Part shown: one piece after another, positions 15,291 to 48,485 of the stretch
Layout: each line of letters begins with the position of its first letter
Numbering within the stretch: the first letter of the stretch is position 1
Origin: Octopus sinensis
Taxonomy: Eukaryota
DNA length: 64,000 bases
Reading direction: 5' to 3'
Assembly: GCF_006345805.1 (NCBI RefSeq)
Contig: NC_043009.1
Coordinates: forward strand, 27,218,001-27,282,000
The notes under the pieces: model-generated
Seen by the model: only the letters and a program-made list of their open reading frames with translations
Database searches by the model: none
What the model was told of the DNA's origin: nothing
Translations under genes and position numbers: made by a program

Positions 15291-15665
15291 AGATATCAGA
15301 TAAAGATATTACACACATTTTAGGAAGATGTGGTAGTTTTGGACCGTATGAGCGCTAGTTGTTAGCTTATAATTTTATTAAATGGATGTTATCAGGATTT
15401 CCGGGACTGAATTTGACATTCCTCAGTGCCGATGTTTGCTCGTTATGCTACGCTCCAAACTTTTAATGTTTCATTAATCCCAGCAAATCTTACAGAGAAT
15501 GCATATTTACAAATGCTTCAACCAGACGACGACGATCAATGTTCTGTATATAACAATAGTTTCACTGGGACATATTATACAACACCACCAAGTAATTCAT
15601 CTAAACTACAGTGTTCTTATGGACGGAAATTTCTGACGGAGGAGTTTTCTACAATTGAAAGCGAG
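15291..15665 (+). pseudogene. SLC22 copy A' exon 2
   Basis: 375 nt versus 374; TGG>TAG at 15356-58 and a +1 frameshift; intron-1-like sequence at 13620-13870. Confidence 0.92.
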
Positions 15666-16544
15666 GTGAGTGAGTGAGTGAGCTAAATGCAGTAAAACAA
15701 TATATGTAGGGGTGGGGGGCATTGGTAGTGCAGTGGCTAATTCTTTATTTAGCACTTTCATCCATTGACGAGGATTATTCAAAATAAATTTTATAGAAAA
15801 TTTTTTGGCTTTTATACAAATGGGGGGAAGGAGGGATGAAAGAGAAAAGAGATAGGAAGTGAGGAGAGGAGGAGAGAGAGGAAGACAGAGAGGACAAAAG
15901 AGAAAGCAGAAACGAAGAATGTATTTGAGATGGTCTATGGGGAACAGGTAGAGATAATGCTTAATGACATTTGAAGATGTCAATTTCGTTTTTTAAAGAA
16001 AGGGAGAAAAAAAGTCAGAAAGAAGCACAAGAGGGAAAGAGAAAGAAAGAGAAAGAAAGAGTTCTCTCTTTTGCTTCTTCCTGTCTTCATTTGTGTTCAC
16101 ATATATCTAACGTTTTTTAAAATTTATTATTACGTTTTCCTCATCACTTAGTAACTCTTATTTTATCTTCCTCGCTTACTAATGTATACCACCCATCTTT
16201 GTCTGTCTGTTTGTTTGTTTGTCTGTATGTGTCTCTCTGTCTGCCTCTCTCACTCACTCACTCTCTCTCTCTCACTCTCTCACTTTCATTTGCACATAAA
16301 CAATACGTAAATATATTAACTCACTCTTGTAGTCTTTTGCTAGTATCACGTTTCAATTACGGATGCACATTTTCATTGTTGCCCGAACATGAAACCCGAT
16401 TGTTACATACCTTCATCTTAACGCGGTTAAAGATCTTCTCTGTTATGAGACCTTGTCATAGACAAAGCGTAAAAAACATTTTTCGAAATACGTTACGTAA
16501 TTGTGTAATTCTAGCGCTCAGTTTTTGCTCCTATATTTATTAAC

Positions 16545-16915
16545 AATATGGTTCCGGATCAGTCCCACTGCGTGGCACCTTGGACAAGTGTCTTCTACTA
16601 TCAGCTTCGGACGGACCAAAACCTTGTGAGTGGATTTGATAGACGGAAACTGAAAGAATCCCGTCGTATATATATGTATATATTTATGTATGTGTGTGAA
16701 TGGGTTTGTGTGTCTGTGTTTGTCCCCCCACCAACATCGCTTGACAACCGATGCTGGTGTGTTTACGTCCCCGTAACTTAACGGTTCAGTAAAAAGGTGA
16801 CCGATAGAATAAGTACTTGGCTTACAAAGAATAAGTCTTGGGGTCGATTTGCTCGACTAAAGGCGGTGCTCCAGCATGGCCATAGTCATATGACTGAAAC
16901 AAATAAAAGAGTAAA
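16545..16915 (+). mobile_element. tRNA-derived SINE family 2
   Basis: Matches 7957-8400; absent from paralogous site near 41762. Confidence 0.9.
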
Positions 16916-16966
16916 CCCTTTTAAATTTCTTTTAAAATATTTTTAGCATGTCTGATTTCCATATAG

Positions 16967-17109
16967 ATTTTTATTGCTTGCAAATACATGCTTCGCCGTT
17001 TGCTGAGTTACCAAAATTTTCATACCATCTCTGATAATTTTTTTCCCAATTCTTTATTGGATTCAGGCTTCTGGTAATATCGGCATACTATTTAGAAGTT
17101 ATACATAGA
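16967..17109 (+). pseudogene. SLC22 copy A' exon 4, decayed
   Basis: Paralog of 41816-41972 with the GGTCGG motif deleted; donor reads ATAAGT. Confidence 0.8.
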
Positions 17110-17204
17110 ATAAGTTACTCTCACATACATACATACATACATACATACATACATACATACATACATACATACATACATACATACATACATACATACATAC
17201 ATAC

Positions 17205-44360: not shown

Positions 44361-44899
44361 AATGAAGCTTACGATAACGTAGTCCAAGACACTCAAACTA
44401 AATCCGTATAGCATTTTGAAATTTCCACCTATCTTTGTAACTGGTTTGTCTGCTTTGTCACTCATCGTAGTGCAAGATAGATTCTTGGAAATTATAAAAA
44501 GCAAAGAAAGTACTTTTATGAGGTCGACTTTGCTTTTATTCTTTCGAAGTCGATAAATTAACTACCAGTTGTGTACTTCGGTCGACCAAATCGACTGGTT
44601 CCCTCCCCCAAAATGTCGGGCCTTGTTCCTAGAGTAGATAAGAGTAGTTCTTCTTTCCTTCAGATTATGTTCGACACGAGACATTTTTTTTATCGTGTAT
44701 GTGTATGTGTGTGTGTGTGCGAGTGAATGTGCGACTGAGTTTGTGTGTGCTTCTTATGTAATGCGTGGTTGTATAGTTATGTGTTATATATTAATAGTGT
44801 AGCATATCGAATATGATTTGTGCCAATTGTTGATGATTTATCACCGTTTATTAATTATATATGTCAATTGCTGTGTTTCGTTTTAAGTATTTTGCAGCG

Positions 44900-45850
44900 G
44901 CAATCGACCAAGTTGTAGCGATTCGAATGGAATGTCATAGGACTTCAGGGCTTTTCTTGCTTTCATACATTTCATTGCATTCCTGAACTTGAGTATTGGG
45001 GTGTCAAATTTATGATGGGAAAGGAGAGCATGGTGGAACCTTGGTTTCTTACTGATGGTAATTTTCATACATGAGATGACCAGACGGTGATCAGTCCAAC
45101 AGTCTTCAAAAGCTCTTTACCCTATTTCTAAAGATGTGAGAAGCACGGTAGGTTCCAAATGAACTCAAAGACTCCGTCAACACCATTAGTTTCAAGAGAG
45201 GAGATAGAAAATCCTGCGGAAACTTTTGTGGAATCTCATTATTTTGCTATTGTAGGAACGAGTTGTGCTCGAATACACTTTAACCGTCTTCAGATCATTG
45301 CGGAATGAGGTCTTACAGAATCCTAATGTGGTTTTCGAGCATCCTGTTGAACCACAGACATGATATTCTGTGCTAGGTAAATCGAAGAGAAGCACCGAGA
45401 ACAACAACAAAACCCCCTTTTCCTTGTGCTTATGATCTGGAAAAGGCTATTGACAGTGTGCCGAGTCCAACCATGTGGATGGTGTTTGATAATTTCGGAT
45501 GTCCTGATCATCTCGTCACCCTTACCCAAGTCCTGCATGATGACATATCTGAACATGCATAAGAATCCCAATTCCATATGGATTGGAACAACGTTGTGTT
45601 CTCGCTCCTACGCTTCTCCCTGTACCTTGCTGCAATGATCCATGAACTTCTCACAGATCAACCAGGAAGAGATATTAGATGCAATTGCTGAGTGGTATCA
45701 ACGAGATTAGAAAAGGCCTTTCGGAAGGCTTCCATGACGATGGTTTAACTAAACGATTTTCACAAGATGGGCAACAAGAAAGAACAGGAAGTACATTGTG
45801 ATCAGCGATGACATCCGATAGTCTAGTCGGTAGAGTGATACGGTTATATA
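44900..45850. mobile_element. RTE-clade LINE remnant with inverted halves
   Basis: Minus strand CWTDHRLVISC (end of APE domain); plus strand DLEKAIDSV..FGCPDHLV (RT). Confidence 0.7.
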
Positions 45851-45879
45851 ATGATTTCAAATTTTACCACAAGGTCAGC

Positions 45880-46066
45880 TAATTTGGCGGAGCGGATGTG
45901 TCAATTACATCGTCCTCGGTGTTCAGATGTTACTTAATTTATCGATCTCAAAAGGATGAAAGGCAAAGTCGACCTCGGTGGAATTTGAACTCAGAACATA
46001 GCAGCAGACGAAATACTCCCAAGCACTTCCCCCGGCGTGCTAACGATTCTGCCAGCTCACCGTCTT
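45880..46066 (-). mobile_element. SINE family 1
   Basis: Family match. Confidence 0.85.
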
Positions 46067-48485
46067 ATATGGGTATATAATGTTTATAATGTTTCAAATT
46101 TCAGTTTTGGAGTCGTGTCTATAGAGTCTAGCAAATCCGTGCCCAAATATATTAGAAAAACCGTTGAATCAAAAGAAGCAGCTATACTCGTGGTGCAAAA
46201 GACACATACGTTCCTAGTTAGATGGGATTCTGACTGAATTCCAGATTAAGTACGTATCAATTTAAATTTATTCTAATACATTTGGGAAATAAATTTCCAT
46301 TGGAAACTCTTCTTATGCTTGTTGGAATACAATGTAACAACTTAAAATGACTGATATTAATCAGATAAATAGCCTCATAATCTATGTATAACTACAGCAG
46401 TATTTAATAATTTGTCTTATTGATATACTTTTATTGTGTAGTGCTATTATTGGTAAAAGAATTACAAATTTGACGAGAAATTCTAGAAAAGCTGTGGTTT
46501 TAATATGGCTGAAAATGAAGAATTTCAACTGAAATCAGTAAAACAGAAATCTACACGTAAATATTTTTATTCCTTAAATGGATTAAATAAAATGTTTTTT
46601 TTTTTTCGAATTAATAATCACAAAAATTCATTTACTTCTTAGAGTTTGTCGTTAAATCACGTTTTGAAATGTCTTATGATTTGAAGCAATTTTATATTTG
46701 GATTGTTTATGATTAAATTATTCCATTTAGGAAATGGAATACTTCATAACAAAACTTAATAAACGAATAAACGTAAGAACTCAATATATGTTTTAGATGT
46801 CAACACATGAATCCAGGCTATAAACCTCAGTATTACGTAAATTTTTAATCCCTCTCTTTACATTGATAGTAGAGCACAAGAAACATTAGGCTGCAGTTGA
46901 ACACATATTTCTATCAGTAAATCTCTACTACACTTACCATGGTGTGTCACACCTGGTGATCACGCATTCAGTTATAAGGCAACTCTTGTGATTAAGGCTA
47001 TAGAACTTAATACAATCTCCAGGTATTTGTTGGTCCCAGTTTACTTTAGAAAAATAAAATACTTATTTACTTATGAAAACCTTATGTTTGTGATCAACTA
47101 TATAACGAATTCTTTCATTCAAATGAATATTCAAAATTCATTTGTGTGCGTGATATTGTTGATGTCATAGATACCAAGTAGCGCATTGGTGTATTAGGAC
47201 AACAACTACAACGTTTGTGTTTAATGTTTTAATGTAAAGTATATACTAATCATTATCCAGATGATATCTACAAATGTACATTATCTCTTGCTACTTGCCA
47301 TCGTAAATTGTATTTTCAACTGAAGTAATCCGTTACTAATACGATATTTGCAAGATACATGGATGTTCAACATTCATGGGGCTGTACCACAAATATAACA
47401 TCAAGTTAATGGGATTATCTAAAGGTCATTATTTTCCATATAATTGTTTTAATTTGCTACTTTGTAAGACTAATTCAATAATGTCTCACGTGATTTTTGT
47501 CGCGTCTAAAGTAAATTCAGTGTAATATTACTATTGAAAAACAAATAAGTATTATTAAATAGTTTCGTTTCGTACACGTAAATTAATTATTTAGTTTTAT
47601 ATAGAATGATAGTATTCACTTTTCAATGAACTCATGTTTTTTAATTTTTTTAAAATTTCAGATATATCAAACAAAGATATTGCACATCTCATAATACAAT
47701 GTGGAACTTTCGGCCCTTTTCAGCGCTGGCTCTACGGTTATGTTTTAACTTTAGGTATTGTGTCAGCAATGCAGTTAATGAACTTGCCATTTCTCAGTGC
47801 AAGCGTTCCTTTTTTATGCTACCCTCCGAACTTTAATGCTTCGTTGATTCCTGCAAATCTTACAGAGGATGAATATTTACAAATGCTTCAACCGGACAGC
47901 GACGATCAATGTTCTGTGTATAACAATAATTTCACTGGGATGTATTATACAACACCACCAAGTAATTCATCTAAACTACAGTGTTCTTATGGACGGAAAT
48001 TTCTGACAGAGGAGTTTTCTACAATTGAAAGCGAGGTGAGTGGTTGAGTCTCTTAATAGCTATAAACTTATATATGAATACATACACACATGGACACCTG
48101 GTGTTAGATATAAACAAACACACACACACACACACACACAGATATATATATATATATATATATAATATATATATATATATATATATATATATATATATAT
48201 ATATATATATATATATATATATATATATATATATATATATATAATATATATATATATATAATATATATGTACATATGTATGTGTGGATATAGAAATATAT
48301 ATATATATTGTGCGTGCGTTTATGTGTATGTCTCTCTTTGCATATATATATATATATATATATATATATATATATATATATATATATATATATATATATA
48401 AGGGTTAAAAGGAACACACGAGTTGATATATATGAAAAAACAAGTCAAAATAGAAAATGCTAAAATAATTTTATAAAGAACATTT

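Follow-up and report, generated by a model that had tools for sequence, protein, structure and literature searches.

Why does exon 2 of the transporter genes at this locus of Octopus sinensis join a variable first transmembrane helix (TM1) to a nearly uniform extracellular loop, even in a dead copy? An earlier account, made from the letters alone (hereafter the sequence-only reading), had ascribed this mosaic to recent ectopic gene conversion of the loop, with or without diversifying selection on TM1. The window, by which we mean the whole stretch of 64,000 nucleotides that was analysed, lies within a tandem array of about 17 genes at C13:26.94-27.35 Mb, which similarity searches assign to SLC22 (organic cation transporter-like). 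The array members occur in both orientations and are spread over 410 kb. Exon 2 is found in 17 copies in the array and in two more copies at 64 Mb, paralogs 37 Mb away.

NCBI names the array proteins 'organic cation transporter protein [Octopus sinensis]'. The O. vulgaris protein P0001, which is 99% identical to the product of gene B in the window, showed the 12-TM core of the MFS by profile (Pfam MFS_1, 2e-30; Sugar_tr, 1.4e-29), and exon 6 of gene B matched Sugar_tr positions 173-239. The closest solved structures are those of SLC22 members (OCT2, 2.4e-63; OCTN2, 5e-63; OCT3, 2.8e-60; OCT1, 5e-57; then URAT1 and OAT1). Exon 2 codes for the N-terminus, TM1 and most of a large extracellular domain with cysteines and predicted N-glycosylation sites, 225 nt of the exon being loop-coding. 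The spacing of about 100 residues from TM1 to FDLVCE/TM2 corresponds to a large extracellular domain, as expected of SLC22. Three cysteines of this domain come from exon 2 and one from exon 3, and the predicted sequons are NAS, NLT, NNS and NSS. The first 100 residues or so, including most of the loop, could not be aligned to human OCT1-3.

The window contains four copies of exon 2, termed A, A', B and C, and all features described here are on the + strand. Gene B has an intact open reading frame (Pfam Sugar_tr, MFS_1). Its exon 1 with a donor was located at 24020..24071 by a pattern search in translated frames, and its exon 2 (25354..25727; loop-coding part, 25503-25727) is 374 nt long and bounded by AG and GT. 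Exons 3-9 of gene B span 28628..36121 (exons 3-6, 28628-28731, 29867-30021, 30210-30378 and 32156-32422; exons 7-9, 33412-33626, 34497-34605 and 35900-36121). Orphan exon fragments follow at 37979..41972 (exon-4-like, 37979-38120; exon-3-like, 40395-40498; exon-4-like, 41816-41972). Copy C has exon 1 at 46505..46556, in agreement with the N-terminus of the NCBI model P0025, and exon 2 at 47662..48035 (loop-coding part, 47811-48035). Exons 3-9 of copy C span 51696..63963: exon 3 at 51696-51799, exon 4 at 53270-53422 with two 1-nt deletions and without a GT donor, exon 5 at 56217-56382 with a rearranged 5' end, exon 6 at 58346-58636 with +1 and -1 indels, and exons 7-9 at 59467-59681, 59995-60103 and 63747-63963. 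With its 1-nt indels in exons 4 and 6 and its rearranged exon 5, copy C is not a clean live copy and looks broken in the assembly used. Relatives of its exon 2 lie downstream, namely E (99% identical, at 63 kb) and D (96%, at 32 kb).

The other two copies are incomplete. Of exon 2 of copy A, nt 1-315 of 374 remain at 11947..12261 (N-terminus, TM1 and most of the loop; blastn and alignment). A (TG)n run, read at 12279..12336, takes the place of the last 59 nt of the exon and of everything up to exon 9, a copy of which with an AG acceptor stands directly after the cut-off exon 2 at 12486..12702 (tblastn and semi-global alignment to the G5 exon model). The O. vulgaris ortholog of A has the full 374-nt exon 2. 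Copy A' is a pseudo-exon 2 at 15291..15665, followed on its 3' side by an exon-4-like fragment without splice sites (16955..17109). The nonsense and frameshift lesions previously ascribed to A' were found as described, a TAG stop in frame at 15356-15358 and an additional T within a T-run near 15461-15464. Since the O. vulgaris ortholog carries both, these lesions are real and old. The variable TM1 and near-identical loop noticed in the four window copies were likewise borne out: TM1 was 59-68% identical, and the loops were 86-95% identical.

The history of the loop was compared with that of the rest of the gene in the 28 pairs of 8 intact genes. The loop distances were unrelated to those elsewhere in the gene (r=0.01, slope 0.00, intercept 0.077, Mantel p=0.51), whereas all other segments tracked the latter (r=0.40-0.92, p<=0.03). 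Exon 3, which is just as conserved as the loop, was among these segments (r=0.80), as was the 5' half of exon 2 (r=0.65). At synonymous sites, divergence in the loop of young pairs exceeds that in the rest of the gene by a factor of 2-3.5 (pS 0.208 against 0.059 in G3-G4; 0.315 against 0.143 in G6-G7), and in old pairs it is far lower (0.15-0.30 against about 0.5). The trees of the two halves of exon 2 are incongruent. The loop alignment rejected the topology of exons 3-9 (AU p=0.006-0.016), whereas the 5' alignment accepted it (p ~0.5) and rejected the loop topology (p=0.001-0.003); proportional branch lengths were also rejected for the loop (2dlnL=73-77, 12 df, p ~1e-10). Median dS was 0.29 in the loop and 0.65 in TM1, by NG86 estimates that are saturated in variable regions. 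Both results, on trees and on synonymous divergence, are the opposite of what would have refuted the sequence-only reading. Mean pairwise identity was 0.61-0.70 in TM1 and 0.86-0.99 in the loop, and in the intron it was 0.67, dropping to <0.2. The 5' half, with TM1, gives a tree in agreement with that of the remaining gene. The outlier is the loop and not TM1.

The loop-coding 225 nt therefore depart from the history of gene duplication, very probably by ectopic gene conversion that is family-wide and old. That the loop has been homogenised and has a separate history, the dead exon included, stands from the sequence-only reading; that this was a recent event does not. Signs of recombination were found within the loop itself. 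Sites are more often incompatible the farther apart they lie (p=0.0001 for 15 copies, 0.0008 for 12 and 0.04 without CpG sites). The loop spans no more than 225 nt and has 28-44 informative sites, 17 of which lie in CpG context; parallel CpG decay could mimic some of its homoplasy. The PHI test was significant for the loop at w=100 (p=0.0002 and 0.015) but not at w=25, being thus dependent on window size, and not when CpG sites were left out. No recombination signal was found in the 5' half of exon 2. G1 and B are identical over nt 167-281 (run test P=4e-4) despite a difference of 31% in exons 3-9 and a distance of 300 kb, and the distribution of multi-site haplotypes outside CpG context (TAC..AAT and TTC..GGT) conflicts with the gene tree. 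To account for the very dense mosaic in the last 25 nt, either very short patches or recurrent mutation must be invoked. Exchange is also seen in the rest of the gene, where exon 6 of G2 is G6-like.

The O. bimaculoides ortholog of G5 is 92.6% identical to G5 in TM1; its loop, examined in this one array copy, is 93% identical to that of G5 and up to 95-97% identical to those of paralogs. At its 3' end this copy has the other haplotype (5 differences in 15 nt). Between C and its positional ortholog in O. vulgaris, the 7 differing sites are clustered in nt 207-280 while the flanking introns are 97-98% identical, and at 6 of these 7 sites one of the species has the family consensus.

The decay of A' is confined to one part of the exon. 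In nt 1-237 (15291..15528), where A' is closest to G3/G4/G5, it has 12 private substitutions and one insertion at 105 columns that are invariant in 14 other copies. In nt 238-374 (15529..15665), it has none at 92 such columns (Fisher p=4.6e-4 for a breakpoint at nt 237 that was picked post hoc with the data already in view; p=0.009 at the cut of the sequence-only reading). This contrast indicates that the 3' part was overwritten. Over nt 239-350, A' is identical to G5 (run test P<2e-4), and its last 24 nt are, by the site table, of the C-type haplotype (TACAATTGAAAGCGAG). A' is most probably an old pseudo-exon of the G3/G4/G5 lineage, the 3' third of which (about 140-160 nt) was probably overwritten by functional copies after most of the decay and before the split of O. 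sinensis and O. vulgaris. A' is thus a recipient of conversion and possibly also a donor, for example of the GAA codon to the C group.

This bears on the match between A' and C from which the sequence-only reading started. Positions 15573-15665 and 47943-48035 do match at 92 of 93 nt, and for the 81 nt coding for TM1 a MAFFT alignment gave 59% identity, close to the hand count of about 62%. A single recent ectopic conversion copying the last 93 nt or so between these two copies would account for several facts: of 66 pairs of non-redundant array copies this one matches best, the stretch is free of private changes in A', and one derived base, changing GTA to GAA at exon nt 367, is shared by A' and the C/D/E group only. 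The next pairs, however, match at 90 of 93 nt and the median pair at 85, so that the match is mostly family-wide conservation; over the same stretch A' is also 96% identical to G1, G4 and F. A Sawyer/GENECONV-type run test confined to the loop, in which the A'-C stretch covers 10 polymorphic sites, was not significant (P=0.49). Over nt 239-350 A' is identical to G5 and not to C, which differs from it at 257, 268 and 281, just upstream of the matched stretch, and the introns of A' and C diverge right after the exon. Since both A' and C of O. vulgaris carry the same states, the 3' state predates the species split, and any event must be older than that. A recent event between A' and C is therefore unlikely, and that part of the earlier claim is not supported. 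We concluded that the match is a by-product of the family-wide homogenisation together with one shared derived base.

Diversifying (positive) selection on TM1 as a cavity-lining helix, the other part of the earlier proposal, is not supported either. TM1 borders the cavity in the SLC22 fold. Its pN is high (0.27-0.30), and nonsynonymous changes prevail over synonymous ones in some comparisons (11.5:2.5 in G3-G4, 5:1 between G5 and its O. bimaculoides ortholog, 4:0 between A and its O. vulgaris ortholog). However, pN/pS was 0.54-0.65 over all pairs and 0.69 when pooled over close pairs, which is not different from 1 (p=0.15); it was never significantly above 1. Moreover, TM3-TM5 are as variable as TM1 or more so, with a pN peak of 0.35 (codons 217-243) and a pN/pS of 0.77. 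The 5' tree is in accord with the gene tree. Relaxed constraint fits the pattern, and positive selection on TM1 seems distinctly improbable.

It might also be supposed that no exchange took place. Purifying selection alone would then keep the loops alike, acting on synonymous sites (for splicing signals, RNA structure or RNA editing) as well as on the protein, and a handful of hypermutable positions, most of them CpG, would switch back and forth and saturate fast. The loop indeed has the lowest pN in the protein (0.02-0.05), 17 of the 44 informative sites of the loop lie in a CpG context, and a block of 26 nt has the same sequence in 18 copies, including both copies at 64 Mb. In the last 57 nt of the exon, pS is 0.28 even against these distant copies and 0.21 within the array, so that the contrast expected from homogenisation is absent there; nucleotide-level constraint may therefore explain part of the conservation there. 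In nt 150-317, by contrast, array members differ from one another with a pS of 0.10-0.29 but from the two 64-Mb paralogs with a pS of 0.50-0.52. Since the latter value equals that of TM1 (0.56), the synonymous sites there are unconstrained, which largely refutes this explanation for nt 150-317. The excess in the loop of young pairs would demand about 15-fold hypermutability, acting in both directions. Neither the non-CpG haplotypes that conflict with the gene tree, nor the incompatibility that grows with distance, nor the clean 3' third of a dead exon would be expected without exchange, and exon 3 is as conserved, yet follows the gene tree. We therefore regard this explanation as very unlikely. 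The 26-nt block and the last 57 nt may nevertheless carry an RNA-level signal, such as a splicing enhancer or an editing structure. Even less credible, to the point of being nearly negligible, is a mosaic produced by assembly or polishing, with paralog reads mis-mapped onto the conserved loop. Single-base indels in exon 2 of D and in exons 4 and 6 of C would fit such an artefact, and copy A may be a collapse at the (TG)n run. However, the independent O. vulgaris assembly reproduces A' with its lesions and 3' haplotype, A, and B with differences at 2 of 374 nt, and hence these states are not assembly artefacts; copy-specific private variants of the loop, e.g. in C/D/E and in B, are also kept.

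In this old, family-wide conversion, patches some 25 to 115 nt long, or longer, were very probably copied repeatedly and non-reciprocally between array members, so that divergence in the loop has reached a plateau (about 8% of nucleotides, pS ~0.25) in young and old gene pairs alike. Strong purifying selection on the loop protein (pN ~0.03) may keep the copies similar enough for heteroduplex formation. The patches would end where they meet the diverged TM1 codons (5') and the unalignable intron (3'), so that the process would be self-limiting to the loop segment. TM1 and exons 3-9 simply follow the gene tree in their divergence, with purifying selection relaxed. It is conceivable, though we think it rather doubtful, that the homogenisation is adaptive and not a passive by-product, the array then acting as a battery of transporters that differ in their substrate pockets (TM1 and TM3-TM5) but are all obliged to keep one common extracellular domain. 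If so, the common domain could serve hetero-oligomerisation of paralogs or one shared extracellular partner, and conversion would be the counterpart of the shared constant exons in clustered protocadherins.

Segment-limited interlocus gene conversion is known from other tandem arrays, such as the variable exons of clustered protocadherins, the primate red/green opsins, the globins and RHD/RHCE. As in these cases of mosaic concerted evolution, non-reciprocal patches homogenise one coding segment while its neighbours diverge, the tracts are bounded by divergence, and the segment has a genealogy of its own, separate from that of the gene. The octopus array is thus a clear but ordinary case of such conversion and not a special two-copy event. 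It differs in that conversion acts on the extracellular domain of an MFS transporter, the copies lie in both orientations over 410 kb, and the loop is held at a plateau of about 8% and not near identity. Pseudogenes take part in gene conversion in CYP21A1P/CYP21A2 and in the chicken pseudo-V segments. The dead copy A' likewise exchanges with live paralogs and is kept clean in part, but unlike those pseudogenes it was shown solely as a recipient. With the SLC22 family (OCT, OCTN, OAT, URAT1 and insect Orct), the array proteins share the 12-TM MFS core and a large TM1-TM2 domain with conserved cysteines and predicted sequons. The mammalian SLC22 extracellular domain is described as glycosylated and stabilised by disulfides, with a pivotal role in oligomerisation (PMC10567722; PMC11119549, citing Keller et al. 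2011). Unlike in these SLC22 relatives, the loop in the octopus array is the most conserved part of the protein and not a variable one.

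The array genes are members of the SLC22 family. Protein searches returned genes named 'organic cation transporter protein [Octopus sinensis]', Pfam gave matches to Sugar_tr and MFS_1 (single-exon peptides gave no Pfam match apart from exon 6), and the closest solved structures were OCT2, OCTN2, OCT3, OCT1, URAT1 and OAT1. In a search of the species' own 2.72-Gb assembly, 17 copies of exon 2 were found on both strands at 26.94-27.35 Mb of C13 (NC_043009.1), and two further copies, X2 and X1, were found at 64.07 Mb and 64.16 Mb of C13. The exon structure, with nine coding exons, was derived by splicing P0003, an annotated protein, by brute force onto the gene that encodes it. 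Exon 2 (374 nt, phase 1) starts with codons for the last part of the N-terminus, continues through TM1 and, in 225 nt (hereafter the loop), encodes the greater part of the large extracellular domain. Three cysteines of this domain lie in exon 2 and a fourth lies in exon 3; its sequons are NAS, NLT, NNS and NSS. Reading frames were open in the array copies G1-G7 and in copy B; for the copies on the right of the array (G8-G10, D, E and F), the sequence covered was limited to 3.4-kb loci around exon 2.

The window is AT-rich and has many microsatellites, and its exons are bounded by AG and GT. Gene B is complete and intact, with exon 1 at 24020-24071, exon 2 at 25354-25727 and exons 3-9 extending to 36121. 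Copy A begins with nt 1-315 of exon 2 (11947-12261); a (TG)n run (12279-12336) then leads to a copy of exon 9 (12486-12702). In O. vulgaris the A exon is of full length (L041 17272-17645) and is followed by about 12 kb with exons 3-6 (model P0012); in O. sinensis, either a deletion associated with the microsatellite or a collapse of the assembly accounts for the state of A. Pseudo-exon 2 of A' (15291-15665) is followed by an exon-4-like scrap (16955-17109), and orphan exon-3- or exon-4-like fragments lie between B and C (37979-38120, 40395-40498 and 41816-41972). The exon-3-like orphan serves as an upstream exon of the C-type gene in the O. vulgaris model P0008. A repeated ORF fragment on the minus strand (5386-6398, 9333-9629 and 27436-28512) matched zf-RVT weakly, at an E-value of 3e-4 that falls short of the Pfam cut-off; such pieces are probably remnants of non-LTR retrotransposons scattered through introns and spacers. 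Elsewhere in the array, between G5 and G6, a stretch of 1.3 kb contains tblastn matches to residues 283-373 and 482-554 with the usual introns missing (C13:27082601-27083889), possibly a processed-pseudogene fragment.

Copy C has exon 1 at 46505-46556, exon 2 at 47662-48035 and exons 3-9 extending to 63963. Relative to its positional ortholog in O. vulgaris, the O. sinensis assembly shows two 1-nt deletions in exon 4 (53270-53422), a rearranged 5' end of exon 5 (56217-56382) and +1/-1 indels in exon 6 (58346-58636). The NCBI model of C (P0025) is a truncated product of 305 aa, and the O. vulgaris C-type gene lacks 8 nt in exon 7. Decay of the C-type gene in both species is one possible reading; another is that the assembly is wrong at some of the lesions, since copy D has many single-base indels: exon 2 of D (L003, C13:27297788-27298161) carries at least six, with few substitutions relative to C and E, and looks like either a locally misassembled stretch or a pseudogene of very recent origin. 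Annotators should be warned that several copies in the window are remnants, namely A, A', the orphan fragments of exons and possibly C.

The sequence-only reading had proposed gene conversion of the loop, next to a strongly variable TM1. This interpretation was supported in part. Conversion of the loop was borne out by decoupled distances, discordant trees, the distant copies X1 and X2 as a control, a recombination signal and individual tracts. These five lines of evidence point to homogenisation of the loop by exchange, beyond mere conservation. The conversion is real, but it is family-wide and old. Along exon 2, mean pairwise identity was 0.61-0.70 in TM1 and 0.86-0.99 in the loop. The homogenised zone runs from the end of TM1 to the intron, where identity is 0.67 over the first 25 bases and the copies are then unalignable.

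In 28 pairs of the eight intact genes, the distance in each segment was compared with that in the other exons. Correlation was seen for all non-loop segments (r=0.40-0.92, Mantel p<=0.03). Among them were the 5' half of exon 2 (r=0.65) and exon 3 (r=0.80, intercept 0.003), the latter being conserved as strongly as the loop. The loop distance was decoupled from that of the other exons (r=0.01, slope 0.00, intercept 0.077, p=0.51). In the young pairs G3-G4 and G6-G7, pS was 0.208 and 0.315 in the loop vs 0.059 and 0.143 in the rest, respectively; in old pairs it was 0.15-0.30 in the loop vs about 0.5 elsewhere. Loop divergence is a plateau and not a slower clock. The separate trees for the two halves of exon 2 were incongruent in AU tests. 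The loop alignment rejected the topology of exons 3-9 (p=0.006-0.016), and the 5' half accepted it (p~0.5) and rejected the topology of the loop (p=0.001-0.003). Nor did the gene tree fit the loop when its branches were scaled (2dlnL=73-77, p~1e-10). These tests were run with HKY and HKY+G; GTR+G likelihoods were inconsistent on 225 nt.

The two copies 37 Mb from the array served as controls for constraint. Against X1 and X2, pS was 0.50-0.52 in nt 150-317 of the loop and 0.56 in TM1 and the N-terminus. There is therefore no special constraint on the synonymous sites of this part of the loop. Within the array, pS at the same sites was 0.10-0.29, which points to exchange. The last 57 nt of exon 2 gave a pS of 0.28 against X1 and X2, compared with 0.50-0.56 elsewhere. 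These 57 nt include a 26-mer, TGTTCTTATGGACGGAAATTTCTGAC (15609-15634, 25671-25696 and 47979-48004 in the window), which is identical in 16 full-length exon-2 copies, including both distant ones. Three array copies carry single-base variants of it (TTT to GTT in D, TTT to TTC in G9 and TAT to TAC in G10). Over these last 57 nt, conversion may be supplemented by some constraint at the nucleotide level, through splicing or RNA structure, and an RNA-level signal is possible.

Within the loop, incompatibility between sites grows with their distance (p=0.0001 with 15 copies, 0.0008 with 12, and 0.04 without CpG sites), although informative sites are few and many are CpG. The PHI test on the loop gave p=0.0002 and 0.015 at w=100, an outcome that depends on window size. 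The 5' half of exon 2 gave no recombination signal. Applied to the entire exon, PHI yielded p=0.94-0.96 and no significance, as saturated TM1 sites swamp it; the test was therefore confined to the loop. In the site table, the 3'-end haplotypes TAC..AAT and TTC..GGT are spread against the gene tree, the mosaic being very dense in the last 25 nt of the exon, and the block T....G vs C.T.A.A at nt 152-167 separates the sister genes G6 and G7. G1 and B, the most divergent two genes (31% in exons 3-9), lie 300 kb apart and are identical at nt 167-281 (P=4e-4). This Sawyer-type run test was applied to the loop only, since regional rate differences bias the whole-exon version.

Exchange between copies could in principle also proceed by unequal crossing-over. 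Such an event would exchange the whole sequence beyond its breakpoint, but the gene tree is retained on both flanks of the loop, in exons 3-9 as well as in the 5' half of exon 2. Patches with two breakpoints are therefore needed, i.e. gene conversion. An origin of the mosaic in misassembly was rejected in view of the independent O. vulgaris assembly. Apart from the loop, exon 6 of G2 (C13:26965325-26965597) differs from that of G6 (C13:27092603-27092875) by only 5.2%, against 24-31% for exons 5 and 7 on either side. This marks another exchange within the array, covering a whole exon.

The particular event put forward from the sequence alone, a recent conversion between A' and C, fared differently. 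The observations behind it were confirmed: 15573-15665 and 47943-48035 match at 92 of 93 nt, A'-C identity in TM1 is low (59%), and A' is dead, with a stop codon (TAG, 15356-15358) and one surplus T near 15461-15464. In O. vulgaris, the ortholog of A' (L041 29845-30247) has both lesions, several other changes private to A' and an identical 3' end, and additionally a 28-nt insertion. Since the lesions are common to both species, A' is a real pseudo-exon older than the O. sinensis/O. vulgaris split. The match of 92/93, however, is little above the family background (next pairs 90/93, median 85/93 over 66 pairs), and G1, G4 and F are each 96% identical to A' across the same 93 nt. As the A'-C run is not significant (P=0.49) and O. 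vulgaris shares the state, a recent A'-C conversion is not shown.

At columns where 14 other copies are invariant, the private changes of A' all fall in nt 1-237 (12 substitutions and one insertion; 105 such columns), and there are none in nt 238-374 (92 columns; Fisher p=4.6e-4, or p=0.009 at the boundary originally proposed). The simplest reading of this pattern is that the 3' part would have been overwritten from live copies, since neutral decay should not spare the last third of an exon. The 5' part groups with the G3/G4/G5 lineage. The clean part equals G5 up to nt 350 (identity at nt 239-350, P<2e-4 in the loop-only run test), and the last 24 nt are of the C-type haplotype, including one diagnostic base (GAA for GTA).

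Diversifying selection on TM1, which had been offered as a possible addition to conversion, found no support. TM1 has a pN of 0.27-0.30 and a pN/pS of 0.54-0.65 across all pairs, and the ratio of 0.69 in seven pooled close pairs does not differ from 1 (p=0.15). Variability is at least as high in TM3-TM5 (pN up to 0.35, pN/pS 0.77), and the 5' tree agrees with the gene tree. The variation of TM1 fits relaxed constraint, though single sites could be under positive selection.

Exon 2 of C and of its positional ortholog in O. vulgaris differ at 14 sites, seven of which are clustered in nt 207-280. Six of these seven pair the family consensus in one species with the state private to C/D/E in the other. 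The introns adjoining this exon are 97-98% identical between the species. The segment is a candidate for a conversion patch younger than the O. sinensis/O. vulgaris split. Over the four exon pairs A, A', B and C, divergence between the species proceeded at a similar pace in the loop (about 2.7%) and the 5' half (about 2.3%; hand sum). O. vulgaris (L041 1-12429 and 36659-39863) also has an extra B-like exon 2 (B2, L041 11557-11930) with four differences from B, and a local segmental duplication absent from the O. sinensis assembly; the array structure differs between the two species or their assemblies.

The comparison with O. bimaculoides rests on one array-type gene (P0016, L040), whose exon 2 is of the G5 type, with TM1 92.6% identical to G5; a protein search with exon 2 alone gave 18 proteins and a single array copy from this species. 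The loop of this single copy is 93% identical to G5, no closer than to paralogs (up to 95-97%), and has an alternative 3' haplotype with five differences in 15 nt. The model is chimeric (L040 11184-15207, CM046613.1): exons 3, 7, 8 and 9 are of the G2 type (92-94% identical), exons 4-6 are missing, the introns are unusually short, and the locus contains 2.8 kb of N.

In mammalian OCTs, the TM1-TM2 domain is unique to SLC22, disulfide-stabilised and glycosylated (PMC10567722), and it is described as pivotal for oligomerisation (PMC11119549, citing Keller et al. 2011). In view of these roles, a shared function is worth testing as an explanation of the uniform loop; the octopus array suggests that the extracellular domain may have a function common to all paralogs in this lineage. 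For annotation, loop similarity is uninformative on which copies are orthologs. For cephalopod genomics, an SLC22 expansion of about 17 genes is flagged; no paper on an SLC22 array or on such a mosaic in cephalopods was found in the literature searched. Concerted evolution limited to a segment is well known from tandem arrays. The octopus array adds to it a clean and internally controlled case, in which gene conversion is limited to one protein domain within an exon, the control being two paralogs on the same chromosome without sign of exchange over most of the loop, and the extracellular domain of a transporter is homogenised while its membrane helices diverge.
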